Assembly (NCBI GenBank): GCA_965202585.1
Contig: OZ241833.1
Coordinates: 28,954,001-29,018,000 of the forward strand
Direction of reading: 5' to 3'
Length of the DNA stretch: 64,000 bases
From: Thalia democratica
Taxonomy: Eukaryota
Each line of letters starts with the position of its first letter. The stretch's first letter is position 1. Of this stretch, positions 3,052 to 43,000 are shown one piece after another. The position numbers and the translations under genes were made by a program. The notes beneath the pieces were generated by a model, which saw only the letters and a list, made by a program, of their open reading frames with translations, searched no databases and was not told the origin of the DNA.

Positions 3052-3197
3052 GTGACTGAAGCCCGCGCGATATTTTTACTTCATAACAACAAATGGGAAT
3101 TAGACTTTTTACACTTACCAATTCGTCTGTTTTGTTTTCAAAGAGCTTTTAATGCTGGTTATTTCGCGACAAACAAAATCCAACTAACTTTTATATT

Positions 3198-4299: not shown

Positions 4300-4300
4300 T

Positions 4301-10759: not shown

Positions 10760-10954
10760 AAAAGAAGATAATATTTAGTGGCTCACGTAAACTACAGTGT
10801 ATTTTTTTTTTCCGACGGATAAAATGGTAGGACCTCCCTGACCAACGCAAAATTATATTAACAAACTTATCAAAACAGTGCTAACTAACTATTAATTTTG
10901 ATAAAAATATGAAAAAGTTTTAATCAATATTGTTTGTTAATTTTAATTCTCTTT

Positions 10955-12849
10955 AACCTCTTTATTGTCAGTTTCTGAATATTAGCTTTACGAAATCATA
11001 TTACGCTAAAATACAAATTTTATAAGCTTTGTCTAAATACTTGTTTGTCTATTTTCATTTACAAATATTGAGTCATTCTTTACTAATTTACTTAATAAAA
11101 TTTAACGGCAAGAAAAACTTAAAGGCATTTTATTTACTTAATTAAATTATTTTAAAGTACAGTGTATTACTTTACGAACTTAACCAATAACTTATAATAC
11201 TTTAGAAAATTTTATCAAAGTTTAAAACTTACAGTAATAAAATATTTCTATTGAGGCAAGATTTAACAACTAAACAAAATGTATTGTTTTCTCTCCTGAT
11301 ATATAGACTATGTACAGTAAATATATTTACATTTTATTTCAAACTATTATCAATCAGTAACTACACTACAACAAAAATTTATAAATTGTTTTTGTGTTTT
11401 TTAAATTTGCTAGAAATGTTGGTTTAAATGAGGTAATAAGTGTAAGTTTGGTTTATTGTTAAAGCAGTTTATAAAAAGATCATTTTATGTAAAAAAGAAA
11501 TATAAGTATGTTGACTTTCATAGAAATCTAAGTCATTTTAACAAAGTGTTTCTCATCTTTAGTACAATAGCTGATTAATAAAATTAAAGTACTGTTTACT
11601 TTATTATTTCAAAAAAAGGTGGGAGGTTGTTTAGTATAGTCTTGACATAACTGTTTAGTATAACTTTTTTTTTTAATTAAAAAATAAAATATTTCCCGAA
11701 CATTATAACAGTACTAATAAGCATTTCAACAAACTTCCTCTTAATTTCAGCACAGCCTTAAATAGATAAATTAAAAACTAACCGATGCTTTAAAACAAAT
11801 GTTTCTTTCGTAACTAAACATTTTCTATTGAATAATTTTAAAAATCATTTGAAACTTGAAAAACAAGAGTTCAAAAGTACTATAAACTTATTTTACGTTT
11901 CTTAGACTTTTGCTAAAAACTTATGTTAAGATACTTGTGTTGTTTGTATTTAAAGTAAACTACTACTTTTTAAACTAGGGGTAAGACGTGGCCCACGGAG
12001 GTAATTAATTAAAGTTTAATTGTAAATTAAAGTTTAAGCTTGTTTGTGATATATCGCTTACGATTTTTATAAACAACAGAAAATTTTACTCTGCAACTTT
12101 GTTCTTTTACTTGTTGTCTATTTACAATAAATGCTAATAAGAAAATGCTAGAAACTTAAAACAATAATACTTTATGTAAAATAAAAATTCAACTTATGTA
12201 TAAGCTATCGTTATTCTATAAGTTTTTACTTATAACAGAATAAACTTATTTTTTGTCTTTATTAATGTAGCTCCTCTACTTATTATCCCCTCTTGTTGTA
12301 ACTCTTGTAAATAGTCAAAAACGAAACTTTTTTTTTTGACCCAAACTAATAAAAAAAGTTTTAATTATTTTTTATATAATTTAAACCAGCCATTCTTAAC
12401 TAGGGGTAAACTTACCCCTGAGGGTTAATTCACTTGTTTTAAGTGGTAAATTTTATTTAATACGAGGTATGAAAATTAATTCTAATTAGTTGTTTTTTAA
12501 CTTAGAAGTTAGTATCAAACTGTATATTTTTTAAGTTAAATAAAGTCTTTACGTTTTACGATTTTTTATATATAATAAGCTTAAAGTTCAAAAAATCAAT
12601 TCTCAAAATTAAACACTATTTTGTATATTTGGGGTAGATTTGGTAGTCACCATCCAAAAAAGCTAAATTTGTTAATAACCTTCCTAAAAGGAGTAGAAAA
12701 TTAATAAAAGGTTGAGAACCGCTGTTTTAAACAATTTTATTTTTTGATAAGCTAATAAAATGCATTAATTTTTCTTTAAGATAAATTAAAAAATTTAAAA
12801 CGATGCTGCTCTGTATTCAGTATTATATTTTGATAGTACTACTTTGAAA
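10955..12849 (+). repeat. Segmental duplication block X' (copy of 17280-19185)
   Basis: Direct, colinear match from aacctctttattgtcag to gatagtact..tttgaaa. Confidence 0.93.
12387..12724. mobile_element. hAT (Charlie/Buster-like) MITE, copy inside block X'
   Basis: Termini CAGCCATTCTTAAC.. / ..GTTGAGAACCGCTG; 8-bp TSD atttaaac/ttttaaac with central TA. Confidence 0.7.
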
Positions 12850-13924: not shown

Positions 13925-14350
13925 TAAATAGTAGAAAATTATTTCCGCAACAAAATGGTGAACTTTCGTAAAGAAAAAATGCTGCAAAATAATAGTGGGA
14001 CAATATCGGCAAAAAAGTCTCAAGGTCTTCCAAACACTGCACTTAATTCAAATGTTCAAAGTTTGTTGGGTAATGAACCTTCGAATTTAGTAATTACTAG
14101 CGCACCCAATCAAACACTTCAAAATCAACCAATTATAAACATTGCACCAAATTACACTTTAAATCCTTACAACACACACATAACAAATCAAATTTACAGT
14201 AACTGGATTGCTAATAACTACTATCATCAAAATTTAAAGAAATACTTTAACTTTTTGAATCAATTGAACCGCGCATCATTGTACAGTCTGCTGTCTCGAG
14301 ACAGGTCAAATTCAAACGGCCAGTACTTGCAAAACGTGAGAAATTACCAA
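13925..14350 (+). pseudogene. Third, 5'-truncated fragment of the homeobox gene (end of HD3 helix 3 plus N/Q-rich region)
   Basis: Matches ~30127-30552 ([21 protein letters not shown]); corresponds to ORF 13955-14398. Confidence 0.85.
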
Positions 14351-15539
14351 AAACTCTATAAAATTATGACTGTAGTAGACAAAAACAATTTATTGTAAAT
14401 TAATGAAAACAACATAAATCAAAATATTATACTTGTAAAATAAAGTTGTTAGTAGTTTTATAACTAAAAGCGCAAGTAAACAAACAAAAGACTTGTAGTG
14501 TATAAGCATTTTATCTAAATTGAAATAACTAATGTTTACGAAAAGCAGCAACTTGTAGTAAAATATTGTTATTTAAAAAATTTAAAGAACTACTTAAAAA
14601 TACACTATTATATAAAAAACATAACTTTCTTCTATAATACAATTTATGATTAAATAAATACTAAAAAATGACTATAGCAGATTATGCAATTCGTTTTGTT
14701 CGTTAAAGATAACTTTATTTGAAAACTTATAAGTGTATAATATAAGACTGTTATTGAAAATCAGATTCCTTAAAAAATAAGAATAAAAGAACAAAATATT
14801 TTTTTTTATAACATAATGTAATATTAAACTACAGCTTTACAGAAAAAACTAACGATTATGGTAGTCAAGTATAGTTTGTTTGTATTAATATTGCAATTTT
14901 TTAAAACTTATAAATATAGCACAAAGAAGTAACCTTTATATAACTAAAAAACAAGTTAATTAAAAAAGTAATGACATACAGAAAAAAAGCATAACTTTAT
15001 TTAACCTAAAACACTAACTAGTTAAAATAGATACTTATACAACAAAAGTTTTAATTATTTATTATCACTACTGCGAGTTTGTTGTCAATACGATGGACCC
15101 AGGCATCAAAACTTAGGCCACTTGAACTTAAAAACAGATAACGAAGAAATGAAGAATACGAATAACACAAAAAGTTAATTTTGATAAAACAAAAAAAAAA
15201 CATAATTTAATTGCAAGTTTATAGATAAACATAAAAATAAAAAAGTTTAACACACAAACTTATACTTTTTAACTTATTTACGCTTTGATGTAGGATGATT
15301 TTGTAAACCTTGTCTTTTCTTCTCCTTAAAAGCAATATCATCATTAACACTTTCAATAATCTGTTATATTAACAAAATTTGTTATTAAAATTACAAATTA
15401 TTGAACGACAGAAAATGGCCCTCAATATGTTTTGTCTTAAGACCTGATGTAAGGAAAAACTTTTCGGGTACAGTTTAATTTCCTTTCCAGGACAGCTTAA
15501 CATAAAAAGTAAACTTTTTTCGAAAAATAATTACAGTAG

Positions 15540-15757: not shown

Positions 15758-16237
15758 AGACTGTGTAGAAAATTTAGATATGAAATTAATTCTTTATTGA
15801 TAAAGAAAACTAATCCAAAGTTTTGTAACTTTTAAATAGAAGCATAATTTTTTTTTTATTGAAAGAGCACTAAACTGAATTGCCCAAACATAATAGATAA
15901 ATAAGCAAAATTACTAAAATTTAAAGGTTTTGTAAAAATAAAAATTCTCACTTAAAAGGTTAATTTTATACAAAAAATAACTATTTGTAGAATAAAATAG
16001 ACTTTTTTTTATTAAAAGAGCAGCTTTATACAAAAATAATCAGTATAACTTATATATAAGAATAACTTAATGACGAAGCATAGTTAATGATATGACAAAA
16101 TTTACAAAAAATATATGACTGTGGTAGACAATTGTTATAGCGTTTAGTACATGTTTTTTAACAACGTTTTTTATCAGTAAAATACTTAAAATAAGGTAAA
16201 TTAAGAAAACAGAAATACATTTCATCAATTTTCACAG

Positions 16238-16667
16238 TGATAACGCGAGGAAAGCTGTTTTTGTCATTTACAAGTACCGCGCGGAAAAAGGACTGCCTCC
16301 TGGCGGCATCTGGCTTGATGTAACCCTTCGGGATTCGTCATCTACTGGCTCGGATGCCAACCCCTTCGTTTTCTCCAACGGAGCTAAAGTAGAAGATACC
16401 AACGTTGTGATAAGGTGGGATGTAGACCAGCCTTTTTATTCGTTAAATAACCACTGCTCTTACCTGGCTGCCGGGGGACTTAAAGAAAGTGGCTGCATTG
16501 ATTATTATGCCGCACTATGTAAAACAAAAGGAAAATGCGAAGAGGAGGAAGAGTGCCCAATAAACAACGAATCAGGCCGTTCCCGCGCAAACTTGCCGGT
16601 TTTCGCGCTTTTTATGGCGGGCAGCGTCTTTCGAGCCTTCTACGCCCTCGTCGGCCCTGTGGCGTAA
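16238..16667 (+). CDS. Terminal exon of a C-type lectin-like domain protein with hydrophobic C-terminal tail
   Basis: Acceptor TTTTCACAG|16238. Open frame DNARKAVFVIYKY..GGIWLDVT..PFVFSNG..IRWDVDQP..NNHCSYL..GLKESGCIDYYAALCK matches the CTLD WIGL / F.W.DG / W..GEP / C / W.D..C / .C pattern. It ends ..LPVFALFMAGSVFRAFYALVGPVA*. GC-rich island; upstream exons not found. Confidence 0.7.
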
Positions 16668-18722
16668 GCTTGCGCGCGCCTTCGTTCGAGTGGAAACTCT
16701 TCTTTCGAGTTTGCACCTGAAAAACCGTTGTTACTATTTGTAAGTTTAAAACATACACGTTTTATCGTGTACACGAATATTATGTGAGTCTTACTTTGTT
16801 TGTTTCTGTATTCTTTTGAAATTCTTGTTTGCTAATTTTTGTTGATGTAAAGCAATTAACATGTGGCACTTGGGTACTTTAAGCATTATAAGTACATTAA
16901 ATCAACATGTTACTCTTATAAATCAAACAGTTTTTACGTTATGAGTTGTCCATAAAACTTTTTACGACTGCAAATTACCAAATTTTATTATTTGAAACTT
17001 TTATACATTTTATTTGCTTTTACAGCACAGCTTCACAAATAATCAAAAATAAGTGTAATTAGAAGTAAAATGATATTTGTTTTATAAAGTTTAGGCTTAC
17101 ATAGATTTCAACTTTTAAACTTTACTTAAAACTTTTGTTATTCAAGTTAATAAACCATGCTTTTTTTACCTTTTAAGCAAAAAAGATCAAAGCTTAAGGT
17201 TTTTTTTTAACGCAGGTTTACACATAAATTACATTTATTTTCTTTTTTATAATAATACTTTACTACATATTAAACTAAAAACCTCTTTATTGTCAGTTTC
17301 TGAATATTAGCTTTACGAAATCATATTACGCTAAAATACAAATTTTATAAGCTATGTCTAACTACTTGTTTGTCTATTTTCATTTACAAATATTTAGTCA
17401 TTCTCTACTAATTTACTTAATAAAATTTAACGGCAAGAAAAACTTAAAGGCATTTTATTTACTAAATTAAATTATTTTAAAGTACAGTGTATTACTTTAC
17501 GAACTTAACCAATAACTTATAATACTTTAGAAAGTTTTATCAAAGTTTAAAACTTACAGTAATAAAATACTTCTATTGAGGCAAGATTTAACAACTAAAC
17601 AAAATATATTGTTTTCTCTCCTGATATATAGACTTGTAAAGTATATATATTTATATTTTATTTCAAACTATTATCAATCAGTAACTACACTACAACAAAA
17701 AATTATAAATTATTTTTGTCTTTTTTAAATTTGCTAGAAATGTTGGTTTAAATGAGGTAATAAGTGAAAGTTTGGTTTATTGTTAAAGCAGTCTATAAAA
17801 AGATCATTTTATGTGAAAAAGAAATATAAGTATGTTGACTTTCATAGAAATCTAAGTCATTTTAACAAAGTGTTTCTCATCTTTAGTACAATAGCTGATT
17901 AATAAAATTAAAGTACTGTTTACTTTATTATTTCAAAAAAAAGGTGGGAGCTTGTTTAGTATAGTCTTGACATAACTGTTTAGTATAATTTTTTATAAAA
18001 TTAAAAGTAATTAAAAAATAAAATGTTTCCCGAACATTATAACAGTACTAATAAGCATTTCAACAAACTTCCTCTTAATTTCAGCACAACCTTAAATAGA
18101 TAAGTTAAAAACTAACCGATGCTTTAAAACAAATGTTTCTTTCGTAACTAAACATTTTCTATTGAATAATTTAAAAAATCATTTGAAACTTGAAAAACAA
18201 GAGTTCAAAAGTACTATAAAGTTATTTTACGTTTCTTAGATTTTTGCTAAAAACTTATGTTAAGATACTTGTGTTGTTTGTATTTAAAGTAAACTACTAC
18301 TCTTTAAACTAGGGGTAAGACGTGGCCCACGGAGGTAATTAATTAAAGTTTAATTGTAAATTAAAGTTTTAGCTTGTTTATGAAATATCGCTTACGATTT
18401 TTATAAACAAAAGAAAATTTTACTCTGCAACTTTGTTCTTTTACTTGATGTCTATTTACAATAAATGCTAATAAGAAAACGCTAGAAACTTAAAACAATA
18501 ATACTTTATGTAAAATAAAAATTCAACTTATGTATAAGCTATCGTTATTCTAGAAGTTTTTACTTATAACAGAATAAACTTATTTTGTGTCTTTATTAAT
18601 GTGGCTCCTCTACTTATTATCCCCTCTTGTTGTAACTCTTGTAAATAGTCAAAAACGAAACTTTTTTTCTTTTTGAACCAAACTAATAAAAAAGTTTTAA
18701 TTATTTTTTATATAATTTAAAC

Positions 18723-19059
18723 CAGCGATTCTTAACTAGGGGTAAACTTACCCCTGAGGGTTAATTCACTTGTTTTAAGTGGTAAATTTTATTTAATACG
18801 AGGTATGAAAATTAATTCTAATTAGTTGTTTTTTAACTTAGAAGTTAGTATCTAACTGTATATTTTTAAGTTAAATAAAGTCTTTAAGTTTTACGATTTT
18901 TTATATATAATAAGCTTAAAGTTCAAAAAATCAATTCTCAAAATTAAACACTATTTTGTATATTTGGGGTAAATTTGGTAGTCACCATCCAAAAAAGCTA
19001 AATTTGTTAATAACCTTCCTAAAAGGAGTAAAAAATTAATAAAAGGTTGAGAACCGCTG
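18723..19059. mobile_element. hAT (Charlie/Buster-like) MITE, same insertion as 12387-12724 (predates the duplication)
   Basis: CAGCGATTCTTAAC..GTTGAGAACCGCTG; TSD atttaaac/ttttaaac. Confidence 0.72.
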
Positions 19060-19479
19060 TTTTAAACAATTTTATTTTTTGATAAGCTAATAAAAATGCA
19101 TTAATTTTTCTTTAAGATAAATTAAAAAATTTAAAACGATGCTGCTCTGTATTTAGTATTATATTTTGATAGTACTGCTTTGAAAATACAGAATACTTAA
19201 AATTGACAAAACTAAGTTTAATCTAATGTAAAAAAAATATCCCTATAATAAATACTAAAATATTTAAAAAAAATGTCTGTTTGTAACAAAAATCATCTAT
19301 ACTTGTTTATAAATAAGATGCCAACACAAAAATCTATAAAAAAAAATACAACTTGTTTCTTAGAGTTATAAAACAAAGCGAAAAGTAAGTTAAGTTTACA
19401 AGTTAATCATTAAATTTTAACGTATCAAGTATAAATTGCTTACTACCCAAATAAAATGTTTTACAACACCAATGTGAGT

Positions 19480-22400
19480 AAAGCTTACTAATCCCCTTTA
19501 GTTCAACTTTTCAAACTTTGATTTTGTAAAACTTAAATAACTTCTATCAATATTTCTTTATTCATTTTTACCATACAATAACTTAGTAATTTCTGGACTA
19601 TCGACAGACTTTAGTTGCTAATTGTTATTCTTGTGTAACAGCAATTGTAAAATGCACAAAATTATCTGCACAAGTTTATATTAAGTTAGTATTTATGTAC
19701 TACGGTAAGTTGTTAATGATTAGGCACTTAAATTCTGTTCAAGGTGACCTTTAGGCTGCCATGGATATTAAGACTTCGGGTATGACTAATATCAATTTGA
19801 AAGTAACAAACTGCGGGGAACGAATTCTCTGAACTTATATTTTCTTTAAGTAAAATAGTACTTTCGTTTTCCAAAAGACATTCCACCTGTAAAGCTTTTT
19901 TTATTAATTTCTATAAAAAAGAACTTAAGTTAAATCAACTTCAAACAAGCTTTAAAACTTCATTACTTGTTTTTCTGGGTGTACATCTCCATTTTGTGTG
20001 TAGTCAGATCCGAGCTATCGACCTTCTGTTATCATAATTAGTGGTTAGTTCACGTCTAACATTGAAAATACAAAAAAATCACTTCTTAACTTTTATTCTC
20101 ATTTAATGTTTTGGTTTTAAATAACCTACATTAGTTTGTATTAACACTTGAAAAAAAATGATAAAATTCGTTTGGGAAATCTGCTTAAGTATAAAAAATA
20201 AAAGAAATGAGTTATAGAGGGGATGGTTGGGTATCAAACTCGCTGTTGAGCTTGTGACCAACTTGAAAAACGTAAACATAGTTTGAAGCTTTCCTAGGTG
20301 ATGTTTTCCTTGTACCTAAAGTATAATGTCTCGTCAATAGAATTAAAAACTATGCATATGTGTGTTTAGAGGTAGTTTAAGTTTCGATTTCTTCTTTTCG
20401 CCGCTTTTTTGGTTTCCAAACTTCTTCAACATCTAAAGTTTCATCGTACATTCAAATTTTTTTTAATAAACTTTTTTCAAATCTGTTCTTAGTTTCACGG
20501 TCTTTATAACAAAACGATTATATAGGGCTAGAAATCAACAAAATATGTTATCAAAAAATTTAGTACGTTACCTGGTAAAACCAAGACGTGGTAAACATTT
20601 TTTGTTTCATATAAAAATGCAACTTTTTAAACTTCTTGTATATTTTGAACAAAGTATCCAACGGCTTTGGAGAATCTTATTTCAAGTGGCTCGTTTTTTA
20701 TTCAAAAGCTATTCTGAAGTAGCCTAATTTATTTTTTTAATAGATAAGTAACTACTGAAACTTTATTTCTATACCTAATAATGATATAGCCTTACCAAGC
20801 TTTATTTAATACCTGTAGATGTAGCAAAATTAATTATTTGTATAGTTGAAACTTTGAAATTAAAAACCATACAAGTTAAAATAACAAACATTATTTTTAA
20901 TAATCAAATATAAACTTTTCTTTTCACTTTTCATTTTTGTTATAAAAATAGAACTATCTACGCATTTTTTTCTGCAAATATACTATCGAAATTGAAATAA
21001 TTAACTTTTTTATTAGACATAATTAAAACAAACGTAATTTTCAAGTTTTTTTTTAAAGAAAGCAAACTCAAAATGCTCACAAAATGTTAATTCTGAATAT
21101 TTGCACAATAAAAAATAAATTTATCAAACTTGTTTAATTTTAATATTTTTAACACTAATAGTATTTAAGTAATTTGGTATTTTTCAAATTTTTCGAATAA
21201 AGCTTAGTAAGTACAGTTTATATACGGAGAGGTAATATGTAGTTATAAAAAAATTGTTTCAGCAAATATTAAACAAAGTTTAAGCCTTGAATTTTATAAA
21301 CAACACAGATGAGTTACCAACTTAATTCAGAAATAACTTTAAAACCTTATTTGGAGTAGTGAACCTTTAAATATAATAACATTCTCTAAATCATTCATAA
21401 ACACTTGAAAATTATAATTCTTTTAAAATTTCTTGAACTCATCATTTTAATACTAAACGAGTTATGTCAGAGTAAAAAAAAATATTTTGTACAAAGCTTA
21501 CACTTCTAACTGTTTATAATAATTTTTTTTTATCATTTCTAACTCTTGTGTTCCAACTGTTTTCAATTCAACACTATTAGCTTCTAATTTCTTTTTCAAC
21601 ATTCGTACTTTTTGAAATTTACTACTGACAAAAATTTATTCTAAATATATACTTTGGTAGTTAATATTTAGCTAAACATACTGATGTAATGAACGTAGAA
21701 AAAATTAGTCTACTTCAAAAATCTGCATGACAGCATCAACGACGAAAATCTCCGGCCTTTTTTGCGAGAAAATTGGCAATGTGATTTGCTGCAAGGTATA
21801 TATACTTTTTGTTAATTGTCTTTTTTTTAACTTTTTTTTTTGATTTAAAGCTGTAAACAATTCGTTTTTCTCGTAAGTGTTTAAATAACATGCTATATAG
21901 ATAAATTTTTAATAACAAAAAGCTGTTGTTATTACAAAAGACAAAAACTGATTTCACACTTGTTTAAAATTTGGTGCTCATGCCACGAATATTCCTAGGA
22001 ATGAAAATGATTAAAATCAATAATAAAAAGAAAAACTGATTTGAAACATTTCCAATACATACTTTAAAATTTTCACAAACATTAGCTTTCATACCAGGTA
22101 GCAGTGGATTCGAAAAGTTACGCTCTTGTATAATTTCAATCGAAACGTTAAACTGACAAGTGCGTAAAACTGCTACACCATGAAGTTTTAAATGAAAAAT
22201 GCGTGAGTTTTAAATTGAACTTATTAATTTCACAAAAACTGATTTTCTAGATGAAGCTTTAGGTATTTCAGTTTAATTTTCGATTAAAGGGTGAATCTCA
22301 GTATGTAAATAGTTTTATTCAGATGTGTTAAAAAACCGACTAGATTAAATTTACAACATCGGTTCAAAAAGGTTTTTAATTGCCTTGTCGCCTAAAAACA

Positions 22401-23270
22401 AATAACAATTATGTTAAAAGCATTTTAATTAAAATATAAATACTTAACTTGGCTGCAGGAAAATACAAAACAAATGAAAAATCAAAAGAAGAAAAACAAA
22501 AAAAAAAGTCTTTGTTGAATTGGAAGACAAAACAAAGAAAAACTTGAGATCAAACCAATTTTCAATCATTTACAGAGCTTTTATAGTATGAACACAGCAA
22601 AATGGTTGTTAAACATGTTAACAATAGATTTGATATGTTTCCTCGTGGCTGAATAGCAAGTACAACTATATATCTCTTAAATAATCGGTGAGATTGCAAA
22701 ATTGGAAGTTGTGAGAAACGGGCGATGAGTAAAGATAAAGTTATGCCTGAGTTTGCGATGGATGTCATCAGTAGATGCTTTCTTCAACAGGGACTTGAAA
22801 GATGGCACGCTGTACGTTAGTTCGTTATAACAACTCTTTTAATAAAAACTCTAGAGCAACTTTTTATTAGTAGACCAATGCTTTAAAAAAAAATATCTTT
22901 ATTATATGTTTTGATTTTAAGAAAACATATAATTCTACTTCTCTTTGTAAATTAAAGTTTCTGGTTTTTTATTGGTAAAAGAGTGTGTATGTAGAGAATG
23001 ACTCAAGTTATATGTTTTTGTAAATCTAATTGGTTATAACTTTGTTAGTAAATATAGTGCAAAAGTATTCTAATTACTTGAACAATAAGATTTTTCTTAG
23101 AAATACCTTTGGAGCATAAAACACTGTAGGTTTTATTTTTCTTGACTACTTAGAAATTGAAACTTTTTACAATGTTTTAGGACTGAAAATTGTTAGACAT
23201 TAATGAGGAAATTGTTAGTAGTTTTACAATCTCCTTAGCTGCTTCTAGTTTTTTCATTGGTTCTAAAATG
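19480..23270 (-). pseudogene. Decayed AT-rich multi-exon gene or TE-ORF relic of unknown family
   Basis: Several AG..GT-bounded, protein-like but stop- or frameshift-interrupted segments on the minus strand, e.g. VECLLENESTILLKENISSENSFPAVCYFQIDISH (~19750-19888), KNEPLEIRFSKAVGYFVQ..FLYETKNVYHVLVLP (~20572-20700), LCKYSELTFCEHFEFAFF (~21035-21110), MLKKKLEANSVELKTVG (~21510-21610), SFKSLLKKASTDDIHRKLRHNF (~22690-22815). Confidence 0.35.
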
Positions 23271-25050
23271 TTATCCTGTGTTTTTTTTTGCAATAAATTG
23301 GTTTACTAGTAAAATGTCAGTATTTTACTTGCTAGCTAATTGAACTTATATGTTTCTAAGTGTAGTCTAAAAGTTTGAAGTAGAAAGTATTACATAAATT
23401 TTCACAGCTTTTAAAATCTATGTAACCACAAAATAGTTAAACTGTAAGACATATATACATAATTCAGGACGTGTTGTACCATTGGTTTAAATTGAAAGGC
23501 GACTTTTGAGTATACTATCGCCAGAATGGTTTATTATTGACTAATCGTGTTTTGTCTATAGATATTATGTCACACCTGTAGTTATGACATTTCTTTTTTT
23601 TTATATTAAAATTTTTAAATATGGTTTATTGTAAACCCTTCAAGAAAATGTTATTGTGTTTGAACAAAAGATAAATTTCTAAAAGCTTTTTGAGCTATTT
23701 TACAATTATTTTTCTTGCAAATTAATACTTTCAAAGTTTTAAAAGTAAATTTTCACAAACACTTACAAAATTATACTTACTTTTTGAAAAATGTAGACAG
23801 ACCTATGTGTTTCTTATTAAAAATTTCAACTATACCAGTTATTGTTTAAATTTGTTATCATAGTCACACCTAGCATTTAAATCTCATGACTTTAGGAACA
23901 ATAAAAAAAATATGTAGTATCAATAAATTTGTCAATCAATCAAAAACTAATGATATTTTATAAACTATTATTATTCAAAACATCTGAATCTTGGCACATG
24001 TACACAAAAATTAAAGTATGTAATTAAATGTTTTCCAATTAGTTTTTAAGTAACTAAAACTTTAAAGACTTATGGATAATTAAACGTATTTTTTCCGGTT
24101 TTAATTTTTTTAGTTAACTTAAAGTTTGTTAATACTATTGAAAGTAAACGTTAAAGCAAAAGTTACAAAATGCTCAATTAAAAAACAAAAGTGTTTGCTT
24201 ACGAAAATATACGCCGGTAGAACCAGCAAAAATATAATCAAAATCTACCAAAGAGTTTTTAAAACAAGATTTGGGTAATAAGTTTTAAAGAAGTTGATAG
24301 ACTGCAGAAAACAAATAGTAGTTCAGCGATTGGGGAACATTTGATTTTAACTTGAAACTCTTTGTGAATTTTAACGCGGATAACTATACCAAAATAATAC
24401 CAAGAACTCGTGATGACTTTCATTTAAAAACTCTGGAGGCAGTATATATCTTAAGCCTAAAACCAGAAGTGTTTAAACAAAATAAACCAGTCTATTCGAC
24501 CATATTGTTTACTTCGTTGAACTTAAATTGATTGATTTTATAACTGCGTTACATTTTATCACTACTGTGTTAAAGACTCAGTTTTTTTAGTTAATGATGT
24601 TACAAACCACGAACTAGTTACTGATGAGCGTGGTTGAAAAATACTTATACTTGTGTTTATATTCAGTAAAATATTAATGTATTAACAGGATTAAGAACAG
24701 TAAATTAGTGTAGTACAAAAACATTATAAAAATCAATGGTAAATGTGTTGTAAAAAATAAATTTTTAAAAGCAGCATGATAAAAAATAAAGTAAAATTTA
24801 CGAGCTAGTACGAAAAAAAAATCTAAAAAATTAAAAACAGTCTACAAACTTTAAACAGTTTAAAGTTGGTCACAAATATTTTGTAAATAAAACATTCAGA
24901 TAAAAAAACAACATTTAAAAAATAAGCTTTTTGTGATAATCTCATTAAATTAATTTAATCTATAATAGAATTTCCAGGATAAAACAAGTAAATTATGCTT
25001 CAAACATAGTTAAGAGGTAGAGTTGACTGCTTAATAGAAATTTAACATTT

Positions 25051-28000
25051 TCAGCTGATACTATCTAACACTGAGTTAATTTCTTTTATATAGCTTTTAT
25101 TTCTGCGGCTCTTCAGTCTTTTAAAATACAATGAACAATCCAGATTGGAACATTGAACTTCTGTCAGTCGCGTGCAATTCCTACATACCTTTAAATTAAA
25201 AAATTATAATCATTTTTACCAGTTACTTCACAATCTCTCAACTCCTACCAACTATATGAAAATTTGTAATTATAACCAGTATTTATACTTCACAGTCATT
25301 TCAAAAAGCATTTTTTGTTAAATTAAAAACAATAGCTAATAATATTTAATGGTTGAGCACCTTTAAAAAAATAACTTATAAATTTACTTTGAATATCATT
25401 CAACAAAAAATGACGAAATTTAAACAATGAACACTCTTTTAAGAGTTTTTTCAGTTTTTTTTCAACTTTTTGTAGCTGATTTGATAACTTTTCATCTGAA
25501 TCATTTCAACAGAAAACTTGACAATTTATCAACGAACCTGGTTCAACACGTGTTCTTTTCGCTGCAAGCTCCTGATTGTGCCGTTCAAACTGCTCACCGC
25601 GGCTTGCAAAGACCCGGAGTCGCCCGTGCAAACGTGGCACAGCTTCTTCAGCCTCCCCTTCACCACCCGGTGGCACGCCAGGCAGTGCTTGGATTGGAAG
25701 AATTGCGATATCGTGGACTGAATGAAGGTTGTTGTTTTAAACAAAGCGCGCGCGTGAGCACATGCGAGCTTTCAAGCACCATTACTTTATGTTGTTTATT
25801 ATAAAATTAAAAACAAATGATTAAATTCATCTTAAACTTATATTATAAATTATTAATAATTATAAAAAACTTGTAATTTAACTCTAACAAAAAATATACA
25901 ATTTGCAGTTAATATTATTTTAAATTTTTGATTTTTAGAATTTTTAAACACCGCACAAACAAATATTAAAAAAGTTATCACAAACAAATTTTCCCGCCAA
26001 CCTTGACCGCCTGGCTCTCGGCGTGGTGGAAGTACGTCATAACTCGGGGGGTTTCCCTGAACCAATCGTAAACGTCGCATCCGGGTATCAGCGACAGCAT
26101 CCTGTGCAATGCGGGCAGCAGCATCTTTGTGACGTAATAGCGGCCGTTCAAGCGCAGCGTCGGGTCCTTGATCACGTTGCGGGGTTCGCGCACCAGCGTG
26201 AAGAGGGGAACCCCGGGCGACCCGCACACCACCACGTACGGGACGTGCTGGCCCGGGTGGTACGAGGACCTGCTGTCCATTGCTTTTCGTTTTCTGTTTC
26301 GGGGATTTTTTTTGTGGAAAATTTGTTTGGTACGCTTTGAGGGTGTTTTACTTATTTTTGATTTTTTTACATGTTGAATTTTTTTACACGGACCTTGTCA
26401 CTTTTTTTATTTGCTTTAAAATAAGTTTTATTATTTTATAATTTTAATTTATAAACCTTTTAGAACGCTTAAAAACTAGTCCTAAAACCAAAAAATCCTT
26501 GCAAATATAAATAATAACTTGAGTCATTGAAAAACGCTGATAAAGTTTACACATTTTATTTTACTTTTAAGGTAAAAATTGTAATCTAACCTTGCCAGCA
26601 CAAGACCAGGTACAATGGCTCCGGGTTTGTAATTATTTATTCCCCTGAATTCCTTGGAAATTATGTACTTTTCAAAGTTCATATTTTCTTGTAGGACTTT
26701 TGAACACTGACTTTGTACATAAGCTTTGACCTGAAAATATTATTTTTTATATTATAACTACACTATAAGCGGTAATTCTAATTAGTTTCTAGTTTTACTT
26801 TCAGTTTACTTTAAGCAGGATGTTTAAGAGATTTATGTTTTTCAGGCTTAAAGGTTGCTATTCAAAACTATTATCATTATCCTATTTTAATATAAAAATG
26901 TTAAAGATTTTAAGTTTTTTTTATCAGCAATTGCTCATAGTTCTTATTTTAACTCTTATACTGAGAACTGCTAACAAGACAACTGGTCTTGATACAAAGT
27001 AAACTTCAGTTTGAATTGAACATAGTATTATGGTTTCAAAAAAATAATGAGCTTAAAAACTATAAAAGTATACAACACTAATATATATATGTATATAATG
27101 TGGGAACGGGTCAAAATTGCATGGGGGCTCAAAATTGCACATAGATACTTTTGCAAGAAGACAAATTTGCATGAGGACACGAAATTGCACGAGGGGACAA
27201 AATTTCACGAAGACAACTTTGCACTAAGGGTAAACTTTGCACGAGTTACAATTTTGCACGGACGGTCATTTTTGCACAAGAGTATAGAAAAAAACTAAAT
27301 GTTAAATCAAAAAAAAAAAAGAATAGATAAAAAATAATCAAAAAAAATAAAAAGTTACCGATCGAGGGTAAGAGTTAGGAGTATCAGTAATAGTAAAAAC
27401 AATCTAAATTGATAAAAAAATAAAATTAAAATTAATAAAAAAAAAAAAATCAACCCGTGCAAAACTGTCTCCGTGCAAAATTGTCTGCTCGTACAAAAGT
27501 ATGTTCGTGCAATTGTGTGCCCTCGTGCAATTTCGTATGCTTGTGCAAATTAGACACCTACCGATATAATGTAATATTTAACCAAACATAGAACCGCACC
27601 TCGCCCATGGCCTCCTTGTCGAAGATGAGGCGGAGGACGCGCTCCAGCGTCTCGCTGACGATCAGGCACCCGTCCCGCCGCACCGTCTCGATCCCCTTCG
27701 CGTCGAAGGTGGGCTGCGACTGGTCACGTGACTCGTACGCGTACCCCGCGTACCTCTTCTTCGTCTGCAGTATGCACGGGCTGTAGATCTGAAAACAATT
27801 TGTTTTTAAGTGAAAATTTAAAAAAAGTTATTTAAATGATCTTTAACAGTTACACAAGTTTTACTGCACGGGCTGTAGATCTGAAAAACTATACAAGTGA
27901 GTGTAATAATGCTTTGTTTTGAAGTTAACATTAGTAGATAATTAAATTAAAAGCATTTTAATAGTTACACGAGTTTTAGCGTTGTTCAAAACGTTCTTAT

Positions 28001-31000
28001 ATATGTTAAAAAAACATATCATTCAGTTTATCAAAATATTCTTTTTTTTTTACTTTTCGATGATATATGAAAAAGTATATTTATTTACTTTGCATCACAG
28101 TTCATAAAGGTTTGAAAAACTAAACTTAAAATTCAACACTTTGAAGTTTTATATTTTAAATTTAGACTACCTTAATCCTCTAAAATATCTACAAATATTT
28201 TTTAAAGGTTACATAAGTATATAAACTGTTTTTAACATGGCGAAAACTAATGTACAAAACTGTTTACTTTTGCAAGTTTGTGCTTGCAAATTATCTAATT
28301 ATCTAATTGTGTATCATTTTTAGTAGTGTTTGCATCAATTAAAGCTTTTACCGTCATAAAAAACAAAAAATATTGTTATTCGTTCTTAAATCGTTAAATT
28401 TAAACTTATTTGCCAAGCATTTATACTGTATAAAGGTACAACAAAACTTGTTAATTTTTGTTTTTATTAAAAATACTATTTTTAAAATTTTTTTTTATAT
28501 TGTTTTTCTATATGGTATTGCTATTTTCAACAAGAAAAAAATTAAACTGATAGTTTAAGTGAATAGATAAAAATAGGTTTACATTAAATAAGTTATAGTA
28601 GACATTTTTTTTAATGTCTCAAAAAGTCAGAATTCCGCAAACGATTGATGAAAAGCTAACACAAATACATCAACAACTTTTAAAACAGCAAGAATACGTG
28701 GAAAAAATTGCCGGAAATTGTCTGAAATTAAAATACTACAAAGCAGTGGTGAAATTTTAAACAATAAAAATGGTATTGTAGCTAAACGCCTAAGTAAGTT
28801 ATTAAATAACTTAGATATTTGTTTTTTTATATTTTATAATAATAAAGAAAACTTTTAAATAACTTTATATTTTATATTAAGAAAAACAGCTAAAACTTTT
28901 ATTTAATGTTAATTCTTCTAGCATATAACGAGCTAACTGGTGTAAAAGCCCCAACAAACGAAAAGGACTTACAAGTTTCAAGTAGTTAGTTAATAACTTT
29001 GATATTTTATTAATAAGGTCAATCAGTAACTATTATTTTGAAACTAATATTATAAAATAAATACACAAATCTTTAAGGAAACAATTAAATAACTTTTGTA
29101 TAAAAAACGTAAGGTTTAAACTCAAATTATTAAAAAAAAGATTGGTAAGTATAAAAAGTATTGAAAAACAAAATATTATTGTTTTGTTTCATTTTTTAAC
29201 TTTTGAAAAAAGATTAAAAGAATACTAGTTTATATAACATGTTTCAAACAATAAATTAAATTAATCTGTAAAAAAAACAAGATTAGTTTCTATAAAAGCT
29301 GATTTAATAAAAAGTGACATGATTAATAGAAATGAAACAAAAAAAACTTACAATTTAAGAGTCAATAAAATATTTTTTTTTTTGACACATAGATATTTAA
29401 TACTCTATAAAAAAACTCTAGGAAAGTCAATTGCAAAGCCACAGAAGATTTCAAACGCCCAAACCAAAAGAAAAATTCAAAATACAAAAGAAGACAGTAA
29501 AAGTTTTTCTTCAAACAGACTCCCACTAAATGCTGACAACTCAAAACTCACGGACACGCCTCCCACGAGTTCAAATTCTCAAACACAAAACTCGCCAGGT
29601 CCCAGCGTCGCCAAAGATACTGACTCAATGGACGTTTCTACCAACGAGATAAAATCACAGGGATCGTCACTGAGCAACGACGCTGAATTCCTGTTGGCTC
29701 GTTTCTTTCTCGAAAACACCGACCCCACCCACGCCGACGTCAAGCTCTTGTCCGAAGCGACCGGGACGAGCGAAACGTCGGTGAGGAGCTGGTTGCGCGA
29801 ACAAGAGCTGAAGAGGAGCGGCAACTGCGCACTGAGCGCAAACCAGGTTCCGTTGGCCATTTTGCGCTTCAACTCGAACCCGAAACCTGCGCTGGCCGAG
29901 TACGAGGTTTTGAGCGGCGAGCTGGGAGCGGAAAGGCTGGCGGTCTTTCTGTTTTTCAGAACCAGAAGGAACAACCTCGGGATGAGCAGCTCGAGCAGGT
30001 ACTCGTTTGCATGCAGCGGAAAGAAAAGAGAAAAGCTGGAAGAGTCTTATGGAAAGTACTGCAACGGCAAACGGCTGTCAGTTGAAAAACTGATAGAGGT
30101 GGCAAAGGAAATCGGTGTTGACGAGCTAAAAGTAGAAAACTATTTCCGCAACAAAATGGTGAACTTTCGTAAAGAAAAAATGCTGCAAAATAATAGCGGA
30201 ACAAAGACAGCAAATAAGTTTCAAGGTCTTCCAAACACTGCACTTAATTCAAATGTTCAAAGTTTGTTGGGTAATGAACCTTCGACTTTAGTAATTACTA
30301 GCGCACCCAATCAAATACTTCAAAATCAACCAATTATAAATAGTGGACCAAATTACACTTTAAATCCTTACAACACACACATAACAAATCAAATTTACAG
30401 TAACTGGATTGCTAATAACTACTATCATCAAAATTTAAAAAAATACTTTAACTTTTTGAATCAGTTGAACCGAGCATCATTATACAGTCTGCTGTCTCGA
30501 GACAGGTCAAATTCAAACGGCCAGCACTCGCAAAACGTGAGAAATTACCAACAACTCGGTGAAAGTGACGGTAACAGCCAAGTCAAAAGTAACCAAGCGT
30601 CTTCAAGTGGACAAGCCGAGCAAAATCAACCATCTGCACCCAATACTGACGATTGTGGTTCAGGTCACAACAGATCGAATCCAACTAACTCGCACAACAA
30701 AGCGAGAGGAGTTACTTGTGATGGAAATGACATGGAAAATCAAGTGGATGCAGAGTCTAATATTGATAAGCTAAAGCGATTCGTTAAAGATTTTAAGTAT
30801 GCGTGAAGCAGTAAAAAAAAATATGTTTATTTTTTTATAAAAGTATGCTTGTTCTGACATAAACTGTTTTGTATTCTTGCTGCATAGTTGTAACATTGTA
30901 AATATATAACAGTTCTATAAAAAAAAAGAAAATAATAAAAAATATATTATTTAATCATATTCTTATGCATCATTCAATTTATTTTTACGTTAAAAAATAA

Positions 31001-34000
31001 AGTATCTTAACGTTTTTGTGTTCAACTTATAATTAAAAGTATTTTGTTTAGTAAAACAAAAACATTGTAATGTGTTTCAATTTTATTACTGACTAAGTTT
31101 TTTATGCCAGAAAATATTTGTTATGCAAGACTAGTTCCTATAGTATACATTGTTCTAAAAAGTTAAAAGTTATAATACATTTTATTACATTATAGAACTG
31201 TAATTGATATAATTGAGTCTGTTCAAATGACTCATTGCGACAGAAGACAGTTCGAATTATTTTGTGCAAAAGCGTACAATTAAGTTTCTAAAAAATATTG
31301 TATTTAGGCTAAGTTTTATCTAATTTTTATATGGCAAAAGTAAAAAAAAAAGATGTCATTTTAAGCATTTTATACCAACTCGATAAATAAAAACCATAAA
31401 CAAAAAAAATTATTCATTTTAACTAAAAAACAACATGAAACTTTTAAATTATTGATAAGAAAATATTGCTAAAAAATCTTTTTAACTGACTAACTTTTTC
31501 AAACTTGAGCTTCACCGGATGAGGGTTCATTTCGGTTATTTCCCCGATCATCTCCATGGCGACGTCGAACGCCTGCTGCTTGGTGACTCCCGGCTGCATG
31601 GCAACGAACAAGCTGTCGGTGTCGCCGTACACCACTCTCGCTTGCCACCGGTGGTAGTTCTTGTTGACGTGCTCGATGGCGCGCTCCAGTGTCCGACGCG
31701 CCGTCTCGATTATGCTGTCGCCGATCTTTGAAAGTTTTTGTTTCGGGGGATTTAGCAAAATCTTTAAAATCATTAATAGAAAAGTATATGATGTACATGC
31801 GTTAAATTGTTAAGCAACTGTTAAAATTGAAATATTAAACAATTGGAAGCAAACAAAGTAGCTTAAATAACCTCAAGATGTAAAACAGTAAATAAAACAC
31901 AGTAATCAATAGCACAAAATTTTGAAAACAATTTTAATAAACTGTTCCATAACAACTTGAAACAGCTTAAATAAAAAACTTAGCCGACCGCAATCAAATA
32001 CTGAAACAATTATTTTTGTTCACCTCAGCGCAGGGCATTCTTCCCGAGAAGCTGGCAGCAGTGTATCCGAACGTGACGTTGGCAATGAGCTTCAGTCCCA
32101 GCTGCCTGTGATGCAACTGCTTCTTTATGACGTCATCGTCGCCGCACTCTTTCATCACCTTTGTTATTTAATTATCATCAAGTGCTCAACATGTCAGATA
32201 GTTGGAACATTCTCTTTTTTAAAATTTATTGACATTGTGCATTAACACACCAGGAAGAAAAACACTTTTTGATTACTTGTATTAATTAGTTCGGTTGTTT
32301 AAACAACATCTACGTTAAATATGAAAATAATTTATTTTTTATACAAAACTAGGACTGTTTAAAACCATATATCTTTAAAAGCCTGGTGCAGCCTGGTATA
32401 AAGTTCACTGTTTTAAAAATTAAACATTTCTTTTAAACCTTTTTAGTCATGACGCGGGCGTTGAGTATCTCCTTGAGCATTTTCGGCAGTATGCCGCCTC
32501 TGACGCGCTTCGTGACGAAACAGACCCCGTTCGGCGACACCGTGACGTCATCGCTCTCGATCAACTTCAGCAAGTGCTTCTTGTTGACGTATTGCGACGA
32601 GCAACCGAACTGAAAAGTGTCGTTTCTGTTCAGAGAAATGTAAATTAGTCACAATTTATGGGTAAATATTCCGTCTTATTTGAAAATATTAGTATCTGAA
32701 ATTTTTAAATTTGTCCTCTGAAAAAAAACCATTGGATTCGTTGTATTAGCTTTTATTGATTTTTAGTGAAGATTTTTAGTCACAAAAGTATGTAATTTGA
32801 CAGTAGATTGTTACTTTTTTATGTGCATAACTCAGCTTGAAAATATTAAGTCTTTAAACTACTAAACATTCAGTTAAAAACCTCAAGAAAAGTTAACTTT
32901 GTAAAATTTCATATATTAACTACCAAAGCATTTTCTTACAATACAAAAACTTAATTTTCAAATATCAAACAACTGACTGGTACAATTGATCCAGTCTACC
33001 GAGGCATGTCGAGTAGCAGTAGTTGTACGCGATCATTACGGAAGGGTACAAGCTTTGAAAGTCCAAAACAACAACGTTTTCATGGTACAATCTTCAAGTT
33101 GTAATATTTAAGTTTAAAATTTTTGATATATTAATATTTATATAGTATATTTTGTTAAGAAGGAAATGAATTAACAAAACTGATTTGTTGTACTAATTTA
33201 TGTCCTATATTTTCCAATTAATTTTAAAATTGATCTTATCTTTCTTAATCTATCAAGTGTTTAGACTTTGACTCAAATTGTTATGTGTTATTTAATAGAT
33301 TAAATTATACTTAAAGTTTTAACTAAAAGAGCTTAAAATACCAATAAAAGATTTAAATTTGTCAGCTTTTTTTCATATCATGTAACTCGATACCACAGTC
33401 GATTTAATCTTATCGAGCTCATCAAACTTGTTTTAATATCAAACGCACCTCGACTGCGGTTCGAATATCAGAGGCACCGATTCCGGGGCTCGCTGTCCGG
33501 CCCTCTGCAAAGTGCTTGGACTGAGGGCCACGTAGTTGGCCCGCCTCGTGTGCCGCAGCATCATGCTTTCCACCTGGAACAAGTATCAGTGCAATATACA
33601 AAATATATTGAAAGAGTATCAGTGATTCTAAAACACTAAAAATTATAAAGTGTAACAAGCTGGGGGGCTAGTATACTCAACAATTTATAATTATAGTATT
33701 ATATACTGTATTTAATACTCACATTAATTGAGTAACAGCTGTAAAACAGTACTTTAAATACATATTTCACTACCATTTCTTGTAACAAACATTGACCATT
33801 TGCAAACTAATTTGTGCAGTATTTATGCACTTGCTTTTTAGCTTTTCTGAAGTAAAAAACCAGTTTTATATAAAATTAATGAGACTTGAATAATTGTAAC
33901 TTTGACAAAAAAAGCACAACTTGTGTTTTGATGTTTTAAATTAAATTTTTTTATTAAATTTCAACAAACTTTAAACTGGGAGCCTCTGGTGAACACTTCC

Positions 34001-40000: not shown

Positions 40001-43000
40001 TTACGCATGAAAGCAAGCCTGAGCTGCGTCAAACCAGCTTGAGTTTGTGATGAATTTGAAAAAAAAGTACTGTGAAGAGCTGAATGTATAACAACTAAAG
40101 TTCTATGTACATCTTATTTAAACAATCAGTTTAAACAAACAACCAGTAAAATGATAGAGAGCAATAAACGATATTAAGAAAAGTCTAAATTAAAAAAAAA
40201 AATCTTGATTTAATTCTATCTCTTTTAATTTAAAGTGAAAAAAATATTTTTAATCGTTAAACTTTTTTTTTTCTCATAACTTTGGTGTTCTTAAGATAAA
40301 TGAAACCAATCAAAAAATATTACTAAATAGTTTTGTTTTCAGACAGTTTTATTTAATTTATAACTTGATTAACAATAAATACTGTTGGTTGCAATCGTTA
40401 GTATTTAAAATTCAAACTATTAAACCCATAAGTACTTTCAATTTATTATAAAACTTAAAATTTTAAGAGTAGACAAATTTTAGAATATTTTTTTTTGGTT
40501 ATACTACAACTTTAAAAAATTAAAAGCTAGATCTCAAACTATTGTAGCATCGGTGTATTATCATATTATGTTATACTATAAGAAAACAGGTAAGCCGTAA
40601 TCCGGGGTCAAAAAACAACTCCAATTAACTATTGTTTCAGACAAAGCTATACTTAAATTTTCAAATACAAAAAAGCTAAACTAATAGCCCTTAAATAGCT
40701 GTCCAATGAAACAATAACCAGAACACTTTAGTTGCAAAGCTTTCGTCTTTTATTAGACATTTTCAATGCAAAAATACGGCTGTAAAAACAAAAATTAAAA
40801 CATAAAATTATATATATAAATGTTTTTAATTGATAAAATGACGTCTATTAAGAGCAAACAAAACACTTTATATATAAAAAAACTTTTTTTAATAAAAAAC
40901 ACATTTACTTTACTCCCATAACATTAAAAAGAGTTTTGCTCCACAAAATTACATATGCAATTAATATATAAATGTATGTTAAGAACTACTAAATAACACA
41001 AAGAAATACAAAAAAATATACAAAACAGATGCATCTATTCCAACTATAGATCAAAGTCAAATTTTAACCCAAACGATAAAACAGATGAAAATGCCTTATA
41101 TAGACACTACTATGTTAAACACAAGAACGATCTACAGAAAGAGTGTTGTTTTGATGACGCGTATGAAGTTGTTTTTTTGGAAGAACCGAATTTTAAGAAC
41201 CTTGACTATAAAGAATATTTTTGGATAAATAAACTCAAATCAAATATTAATTTAGCTAAAACACAATACAGTGATTTATAGGGGTAGAGTAGTTAAAGTA
41301 CATATTGTTAGATGCATCTGTTTTGTATATTTTTTTGTATTTCTTTGTGTTATTTAGTAGTTCTTAACATACATTTATATATTAATTGCATATGTAATTT
41401 TGTGGAGCAAAACTCTTTTTAATGTTATGGGAATAAAGTAAATGTGTTTTTTATTTAAAAAAGTTTTTTTATATATAAAGTGTTTTGTTTGCTGTTAATA
41501 GACGTCATTTTATCAATTAAAAACATTTATATATATATATATATATATTATGTTTTAATTTTTGTTTTTACAGCCGTATTTTTGCATTGAAAATGTCTAA
41601 TAAAAGACGAAAGCTTTGCAACTAAAGTGTTCTGGTTATTGTTTCATTGGACAGCTATTTAAGGGCTATTAGTTTAGCTTTTTTGTATATGTTATACTAT
41701 ACTAGCATAATAAATATCAAAATACCCAGTACTATGCTAATATTATTATTTATTTAAGATAAAAACAAAGTAATAACTTTTGTACTTACTTTTTTATATC
41801 AAATGGATTGTACAAGTAAATCTTTAGAAAAAGTTCATCTTCTTTACTGTACCCATAAAATTTTCTGTAAATATTTAATTTGTGCATTTAGAAATAATTG
41901 TATTGAAAAAAACATCTACAAATACATGCATAAAAGTTTAGACATATTAAAGTTTTTTAAGAAGTTTTAGCTTGATAAGTAGTCTCACAAAATATTTTTA
42001 AACTGTACATGTTTAAAATTAATTCTTTAGTATAGGTTATTAAACTAATTTAACTAAAGAGTTTAGAACAAATAAATAGGACACAGTAATTTATCCACTA
42101 ATAGGAGAATGATAATTAATATTTTTTTATTTTTGAATAAAAACAATTACTCAGTTTCACTGCAGAGCGGATTTTCAAATTATAAATCTGTAGTAAAATA
42201 ATAATGGTAAAAATGACAAATAATCAAAAACTGGTTTGTGTTAAGTTTTTATACAACAAAAAATAATAAATTAATTAAAAATTATGTTGATGCTAAACAA
42301 CCTTTAATTTAAAAACTATTAAATTATAGTCTTTTAGCAAATACAATACCATAGTTTAATTGTATTTGCTTCTAGACTATAATTTAATAGTTTTTAAATT
42401 AAAGGTTGTTTAGCATCAATATAATTTTCAATTTATTTATTATTTTTTTTGTATAAAAACTTAACACAAACCATTTTTTAATCATTTGTCATTTTTACCA
42501 TCATTATTTTACTACAGATTTATAATTTAAAAATCCGCTCTGTCGTGAAACTGAGTAATTGTTTATTCTCAAAAATAATAAATTACTAATTATAAAACTA
42601 ATACCATACAGTGGGCCCGCAACTGGAAAAAGCAAAAATAAAATTAAATTTATTTTTGAAAGTTTGTGGGTAGAAAGCCAAGATTCTTGCGGATTTAGTG
42701 ATTCAGAGTAAACTAAAAAATTCTTTTTATAACTAAAGTTATTCTTTTGGCGCGAGGCGAATTGAAGGGTTTTTGATTAGTTCAAATTTTGATGTCTTTT
42801 ATAAAATCAACGCTTAATTAAGGCCATAGGGGAATAAGCCATGTTTTTTACAAGTTGATCTTATTTTAACGAGTTTTTTCTAAGCTTGAAGATGCTTTTT
42901 ATCGTTTTAAAAAGTTCAAATTATTTTTTGAAATATGACCAGTCAAAGTCAGGCCGCATAATAGGTTCCCTATGGAAAGGGAAAATTAAAACAGCGAAAA

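Follow-up and report, generated by a model that had tools for sequence, protein, structure and literature searches.

Contig OZ241833.1 of the Thalia democratica assembly GCA_965202585.1 carries, between positions 28,954,001 and 29,018,000, a homeobox gene that lies antisense within an intron of REV3L, the gene for the catalytic subunit of DNA polymerase zeta (Pol zeta), and that encodes three directly abutting homeodomains. We analyzed this stretch of 64,000 nucleotides (nt), hereafter the window, and number all positions from its first nucleotide on the forward strand. The window is AT-rich (~25–30% GC), and its exons are GC-richer. Minus-strand open frames running from ~39700 down to 25500 encode a B-family polymerase whose exons, once joined, are contiguous with yeast Rev3. 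Specifically, the exon that bears polymerase motif C (YGDTDS; 31495–31773, minus strand, 5′ limit provisional) matches yeast Rev3 (7lxd, 6v8p) at E 4e-17, vs 3.5e-4 for Pol delta. It is followed by an intron at 27789–31494 (minus strand) whose boundaries can be read directly, with the donor GT at 31494–93 after ...KLKFEK and the acceptor AG at 27790–89. The next REV3L exon (27593–27788, minus strand, 3′ boundary approximate) is an open frame that contains the KKRY motif and is 99% identical to a duplicate at 7954–8149. Both known exons of the homeobox gene (28922–30806) fall inside the 27789–31494 intron on the opposite strand, in full agreement with the antisense position that an earlier note on this DNA had given. 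The following REV3L intron contains a very high-copy repeat (27400–27550) with GTGCAAAA-like units, for which the summed unitig depth is ~170,000–230,000 vs ~100 elsewhere.

Exon structure of the homeobox gene

An ATG-to-stop open reading frame (ORF) of 495 amino acids (aa) spans 29319–30806 on the plus strand. Its first 34 codons are intron-like, with a polypyrimidine run followed by an ag at 29420–21, and we place the 5′ end of the main coding exon directly after this acceptor (29422–30806, plus strand, including the stop codon). The main exon is stop-free over ~460 codons, and a run of at least 460 open codons is not attributable to chance, because ~8% of codons would be stops at ~30% GC. 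It encodes, in order, a disordered N-terminal part, the three homeodomains, a region rich in Asn and Gln (N/Q-rich) and a terminal helix.

Upstream of the main exon, tblastx comparison with metagenome relatives (described below) revealed a 60-nt coding mini-exon at 28922–28981 (plus strand; ag|CA...A|gtagtt), which is preceded by ...ttctag, followed by gtagtt and has phase 1 at either end. The junction codon, AGA (Arg), is made up of the final base of the mini-exon and two bases from the start of the main exon. The same splice signals, phase and AGA junction are present in the relatives L003, whose mini-exon is also 60 nt long, and L001, giving three members with this arrangement, and the main exons of all three start with a shared (R)K-x-I-A/T-K-P motif. 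As the splice sites, phase and junction codon have been kept in two distant relatives, we conclude that the homeobox gene is spliced. A second copy of the mini-exon in the window (9064–9123), belonging to the partial duplicate that we call copy A, is identical at 60 of 60 positions to that of the gene described here, copy B, and the intron that follows differs at 13% of aligned positions.

The mini-exon contains no in-frame ATG, so the gene must have one or more additional 5′ exons. The earlier note had missed the conserved 60-nt exon and had started the gene at 28614, a start that we could not confirm as written: it works as a first exon (28614–28719, plus strand) only with the weak donor ATT|GTCTGA at 28719/20. 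No other nearby frame that starts with ATG leads into a phase-1 GT donor. At the equivalent place in copy A, a deletion of 94 nt breaks the frame, and the candidate exon has no Pfam match.

Three divergent homeodomains in one exon

Comparison of the whole protein with the Pfam Homeodomain model (PF00046) returned three stretches with 39.8–40.3 bits and E 3.9e-10 (curated cutoff 22.9), and the main-exon translation matched the same model at E 2.9e-10. The three adjoining, divergent homeodomain-like repeats that the earlier note had recognized in one exon are therefore borne out in the stop-free main exon, and translation confirmed the ends that it had read for the third helices (WLREQ, FFRTRR and YFRNK). 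HD1 (29670–29822, plus strand; 18.2 bits) has a net charge of −3 and ends in WLREQE, so that among the DNA-contact residues W48, F49, N51 and R53 it keeps only W48, with neither N51 nor R53. HD2 (29823–29984, plus strand; 15.7 bits) has a net charge of +2 and a third helix that reads FFRTRR, with T51 and R53; it is the most conserved domain of the family, with 11 invariant columns and 65% mean column identity. HD3 (30000–30182, plus strand; 19.8 bits) has a net charge of +5 and a third helix that reads YFRNKM, with N51 present and R53 absent. None of the three homeodomains has a basic N-terminal arm. The domains abut directly, with linkers of ~8–14 residues, and HD1 and HD2 are the most alike pair inside the protein (hhalign probability 94%). 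In HD3 the loop joining helices 1 and 2 is lengthened by 3 residues (48 residues against 45 profile positions), matching the insertion of ~3 aa noted earlier; among relatives this loop has 0, 3 or 11 extra residues, one subfamily being without them. Family members retain the hydrophobic core and W48/F49, and net charge ranges from acidic to neutral in HD1, lies at +7 to +10 in most members for HD2 and is variable in HD3. In agreement with the earlier reading, Pfam detected neither a zinc finger nor a CUT, POU-specific or paired domain in the ORF, even at E values up to 10.

The homeodomain region was modeled with AlphaFold2 using an alignment of 13 family sequences. The model contains nine helices over residues 15–188 of this region, arranged as three 3-helix bundles (mean predicted local distance difference test, pLDDT, 86; predicted template modeling score, pTM, 0.80), with the HD1 helices at 15–27, 33–43 and 47–59, so the repeats do model as three-helix homeodomains. 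In Foldseek searches against the PDB, the DUX4 double homeodomain ranked top, with a template modeling (TM) score by target of 0.52–0.60; tandem engrailed was also returned, and the single homeodomains of BARHL2, CRX and engrailed gave TM scores by target of 0.67–0.78. Against Swiss-Prot models the top match was DUXA, and ZHX1-3 were also found, at TM 0.24–0.37. The full-length model is disordered at residues 1–81 and 262–440 and ends in a helix at 441–459 (pLDDT ~55). The N/Q-rich tail reported earlier is present at 30183–30743 (plus strand), with motifs such as APNQ..QNQPIIN..PN and a hydrophobic stretch at about residues 319–358; it is predicted to be disordered (pLDDT <50 at residues 262–440), with low-confidence helices at 319–358, and aligns with relatives P0034 and P0001 at 36–40% identity. 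The C-terminal helix motif (30744–30803, plus strand) is common to the GIHEINxLLEKYK ends of distant relatives and absent from copy A.

A family of triple-homeodomain proteins from marine plankton

A HMMER search covering 1.84 billion representative proteins gave 31 matches, ten of which (P0001-7, P0009, P0012 and P0022), together with their cluster mates, are collinear with the window protein over all three homeodomains (27–47% identity, E 3e-37 to 9e-5). Every three-homeodomain relative derives from an ENA assembly of marine metagenome data, Tara Oceans PRJEB4352 being one source, and lies on a short, AT-rich genomic contig. No named ascidian, vertebrate or other protein in this search belongs to the family, the remaining matches being unrelated multi-homeodomain proteins or generic homeodomain matches. 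The relatives share an N-terminal D-x-PSTS motif, motifs of the N/Q-rich region and the terminal helix, and intron positions are kept among members at 30–47% identity. The Pfam Homeodomain model matches 14 of 14 aligned family members, several of which have canonical helix-3 ends (YFQNRR in HD2, WFKNKR in HD3). A word-indexed protein search returned nothing with the whole protein and two already-known members with the family profile, two scans of JGI metagenome contigs recovered no relatives, and a look-up of the exact 495-aa ORF product gave no record. The family is thus newly recognized and lineage-restricted, to date known solely from the DNA of marine plankton, which supports the lineage-specific multi-homeobox family suggested in the earlier note, and the lineage that carries it is probably the pelagic tunicates.

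No REV3L exon lies beside the four relatives L001-L004 within the 0.4–3 kb of available flanks, and as far as these flanks show, nesting within REV3L is not a trait of the family. The antisense intronic position in the window is probably incidental, and we found no support for a special meaning.

In one relative, P0034 (L003 ~700–950), the N-terminal part of the main exon contains ~4 tandem D-I-P-S-T-S-K-F-A-D-E-R-P repeats, a motif of which the window gene has one degenerate copy. Seven other HMMER matches (P0008, P0014, P0017, P0018, P0020, P0021 and P0023) were rejected as family members, as they lack the NQxPLA signature and three-domain collinearity. They form a separate family with 5–9 tandem homeodomains, found on ENA marine contigs of up to 59 kb, in which the units follow LE.AYQKN..P...E...LA...G....QV..WF and several members end in VKVEPMDV.

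Local copies and selective constraint

Self-comparison of the window with blastn showed that 1412–12849 is a rearranged duplicate of 17280–30598 at 88–98% identity, a shuffled segmental duplication of ~11–13 kb that carries, besides most of the homeobox gene, three REV3L 3′ exons. These are the last three exons of REV3L, which encode the KKRY, C-terminal and Cys-rich parts and occur twice on the minus strand, at 5860–8170 and 25500–27810; the set at 5860–8170 is separated from the remainder of REV3L, but its exons are 98–99% identical to their counterparts. Copy A of the main exon (9561–10759, plus strand) is an open frame with three homeodomains and 88% protein identity to copy B over residues 1–393. 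Its homology stops at the equivalent of 30598, where the tail has been replaced and ~70 C-terminal residues, including the terminal helix, are lost. A further fragment, C (13931–14356, plus strand, 426 nt), covers part of the N/Q-rich region (residues 237–378), has no homeobox and matches copy B at 92% identity by tblastn and 94.5% by blastn. The earlier statement that the gene is present three times thus holds insofar as there are three matching loci, but only one is intact, one is truncated at its 3′ end (9561–10759) and one is a homeobox-free fragment (13931–14356). To call the gene locally amplifying is an overstatement, as the window has a single complete copy and the others were carried along in a segmental duplication that also took REV3L exons. 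Both the REV3L nesting and the local copies represent ordinary genome dynamics and call for no special mechanism.

Across 383 aligned codons, 23 synonymous and 38 nonsynonymous changes separate copy A from copy B, a significant deficit of the latter (binomial p = 0.003). The ratio of nonsynonymous to synonymous substitution rates (dN/dS) is 0.43 over all these codons; for the homeodomains it is 0.31 and for the N-terminal region ~1.0, and all coding indels between the copies are multiples of three. Divergence amounts to 5.3% in the main exon (exon 3) and 13% in the intron, and to 1% in the co-duplicated REV3L exon. The homeobox gene therefore evolves faster than REV3L, yet what acts on it is purifying selection and not adaptive change, and the label "fast-evolving" given to it earlier is right only relative to REV3L.

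Relationship to known homeobox classes

Profiles of the individual homeodomains were searched against all PDB sequences, and the class comparison is drawn from these profile matches. The best match of HD2 is POU6F1 (4.9e-7), and the next five matches are also POU proteins (to 7e-5), including POU2F3 and POU5F1, with ANTP and PRD homeodomains 8–18 bits lower. HD1 matches the Oct-1 POU homeodomain best (1.1e-4), followed by ZHX2 (6e-4) and ZFHX1b (near 1e-3), and ZHX homeodomains recur among its matches at E 6e-4 to 8e-3. The best matches of HD3 are generic, namely goosecoid (2.5e-5), MATa1, NKX3.1 and GBX1. Judged by these profile matches, HD2 and, more weakly, HD1 appear closest to POU-class homeodomains, whereas HD3 does not look POU-like. 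POU homeodomains and the window protein share an F-L-E-N-x-x-P-T and K-P-S/T-x-x-E-I/Y signature. POU proteins, however, have a POU-specific domain N-terminal to the homeodomain, and none was detected in the known coding exons of the window gene (Pfam, E up to 10), although a further 5′ exon could still encode one; inspection by eye of the open frames in the 14 kb upstream gave no obvious candidate for one. The gene had been called unplaceable, and it indeed fits none of ZHX/HOMEZ, ZFHX, CUT and PRD/DUX, but HD2 and weakly HD1 do have a nearest class. The literature assigns HDX, which has no POU-specific domain, to the POU class solely by its homeodomain (PMC2211742) and counts Hdx among multi-homeobox genes (PMC6118893). 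By analogy to this literature description of HDX, a POU/Hdx-type origin of HD1–HD2 is a reasonable lead.

The multi-homeobox state is rare in animals, examples being Hdx, Zfhx, Zhx/Homez, Dux, dve and Mux (PMC6118893), and HOMEZ has three homeodomains and no zinc fingers (PMC2211742). With HOMEZ/ZHX the window protein shares the presence of several highly divergent homeodomains in one protein and membership of an orphan, lineage-restricted family. It differs in that it lacks zinc fingers, its homeodomains abut, TM scores are low and no orthology is apparent at the sequence level; the Pfam Homez model matches only 1 of 14 family members (E 0.035), so that the family lacks the ZHX/HOMEZ signature. 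With DUX it shares adjacent homeodomains in one exon, lineage restriction and a copy number changed by duplication. However, DUX proteins have two canonical PRD-type homeodomains whereas the window protein has three, at 18–20% identity to DUX4, and the window gene has introns and owes its copies to segmental duplication, not to a repeat array or retrotransposition. We rejected DUX membership on the basis of the three homeodomains and the greater proximity of HD1 and HD2 to POU than to PRD. TALE membership was also rejected, as HD3 has 3 additional residues but its relatives have 0, 3 or 11; a weak Homeobox_KN match (E ~0.1) falls on HD1, not HD3. The resemblance to Zfhx, dve/Compass and amphioxus Muxa/Muxb lies in the multi-homeobox state. 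Zfhx and dve/Compass differ from the window protein, which has neither zinc fingers nor a Compass domain, whereas Mux is, by its description, a further likeness as a lineage-specific orphan in an invertebrate chordate.

Function and alternative explanations

We read copy B as an intact, selectively constrained member of this lineage-restricted family, and we infer that it is expressed and binds DNA; we assign this reading a probability of about 0.68. The encoded protein would probably be nuclear. Its basic HD2, with R52 and R53 present, and its HD3, with N51 in copy B, would contact DNA, and the acidic HD1, having neither N51 nor R53, may act as a scaffold or partner-binding domain, with the N/Q-rich tail and terminal helix possibly recruiting co-factors. 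As for the history of the locus, one family member may have landed or stayed in the REV3L intron, and a later segmental duplication would have copied this member together with REV3L 3′ exons; the truncated copy A and fragment C would be what remains of that event.

Several observations weigh against this reading, and they bear on two alternatives to it. Each homeodomain by itself scores below the Pfam cutoff (18.2, 15.7 and 19.8 bits for HD1, HD2 and HD3), and for this reason the homeodomain call rests on the three repeats jointly, the family and the fold. Position 51 varies throughout the family (E/K/R in HD1, N/T/V/K in HD2, N/S/K in HD3), and even between the two copies in the window HD2 has T51 in copy B and N51 in copy A. 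The net charges of −3, +2 and +5 are below those of canonical DNA-binding homeodomains. With N51 variable in all three homeodomains and net charges low, DNA binding is uncertain. The nearest named protein-atlas cluster, moreover, is Homeodomain-only protein, which does not bind DNA, at a score of 0.80, values below 0.9 being leads only. The family might accordingly comprise non-DNA-binding homeodomain-fold proteins, comparable to HOPX or to the dimerization domains of ZHX/HOMEZ, in which a rigid protein-interaction module acts as a co-factor; N51 is conserved in none of the homeodomains, HD1 is acidic and without R53, basic N-terminal arms are missing, and a pTM of 0.80 over three domains suggests fixed inter-domain packing. 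We regard this as a serious alternative, though less likely than not, given that R52 and R53 are present in HD2, that most relatives have a strongly basic HD2 (+7 to +10), and that several relatives have canonical YFQNRR (HD2) and WFKNKR (HD3) ends. The other alternative is that copy B is a young pseudogene, a recent duplicate that is unexpressed or decaying and whose frame mutation has yet to disrupt, with functional members elsewhere in the genome. In keeping with this, the three sequencing runs that contain the locus behave as genomic DNA, with introns evenly covered, and Tara metatranscriptome runs that contain 34–39% of the words of the neighboring eIF2B-alpha gene did not come up for the homeobox gene, a weak negative because a regulator is probably of low abundance. 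In addition, an enumeration of all ATG-to-phase-1-donor frames between the REV3L exon and the mini-exon gave no convincing start-codon exon, HD2 of copy B has the T51 already mentioned, N-terminal dN/dS is ~1 and both neighboring copies are clearly damaged. A young pseudogene is nonetheless unlikely, as copy B has 460 open codons in AT-rich DNA, a perfectly conserved mini-exon and a significant depletion of nonsynonymous changes, and among the copies in the window it is copy B alone that has the C-terminal motif common to relatives at ~30% identity.

Two further alternatives concern the origin of the copies and of the gene itself. The extra copies could be assembly artifacts, for example uncollapsed haplotypes placed in tandem, as exact copy B unitigs have a depth of ~48, equal to the haplotype level (~55) of the adjacent unique region, where homozygous sequence lies at ~105–120. 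Summed read depth at sites diagnostic for A or B is 140–255, vs ~110 for single-copy diploid sequence, which indicates, if only roughly, that the duplication is real and not a haplotype artifact. The shuffled order of the blocks, the range of identity from 88% to 98%, the different 3′ junction of copy A and the presence of A-like variants in the run of a second organism likewise make an artifact very unlikely. Least probable of all, and to our mind far-fetched, is that the homeobox gene was carried by a mobile element or is left over from one, which would account for its dispersal and for its arrival in an intron. Its relatives are not flanked by REV3L, and the very high-copy repeat at 27400–27550 lies nearby, but apart from AT-rich low complexity the host intron shows neither terminal inverted repeats nor long direct ones, Pfam gave no transposase, integrase or reverse-transcriptase match and Rfam gave no match at all, and intron positions conserved at 30–47% identity are typical of host genes.

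Taken as an intact member of its family, copy B adds to the known homeobox repertoire a family with three directly abutting homeodomains, an unusually variable Asn51 and no accessory DNA-binding domain found. If expressed, such proteins would provide a natural system for studying how tandem homeodomains jointly read, or stop reading, DNA, and they are relevant to the emergence of orphan homeobox families around the base of the vertebrates. We also speculate, as a quite unlikely extension, that pelagic tunicates have a new class of transcription regulator, in which a POU/Hdx-type homeodomain lost its POU-specific partner and multiplied into a rigid triple module, leaving position 51 free to vary. 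In that event paralogues would be expected to diversify in target specificity or to shift from DNA to protein binding, and the class might also help to explain where the orphan Hdx or Zhx/Homez families of vertebrates came from.

Neighboring loci

Elsewhere in the window, an intronless eIF2B-alpha gene lies at 49148–50059 (minus strand; Pfam IF-2B, E 3e-67). Its best named matches are from Clavelina, Styela and Ciona at ~50% identity, and its marine-metagenome matches range from 55 to 97%, with near-identical copies (89–97%) in Tara Oceans and other marine metagenomes, a pattern in keeping with a planktonic tunicate as the host. A single-exon ORF of 714 aa (46041–48185, minus strand) combines an RMI1-type N-terminal OB fold with a C-terminal Tudor domain, resembling TDRD3; it also has a weak, sub-threshold UBA-like match (E 0.13), and its domains are separated by long N-rich low-complexity repeats. 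An open frame at 16200–16664 (plus strand) comprises 155 codons at 48% GC in otherwise AT-rich DNA and is overlapped by GC-rich frames on both strands. It has no Pfam match, which also leaves a C-type lectin guess unsupported, and it may be an exon of an unrecognized gene. Finally, an inverted repeat with arms of ~380 nt at 97% identity, ~270 nt apart, occupies 40665–41037 and 41309–41688.

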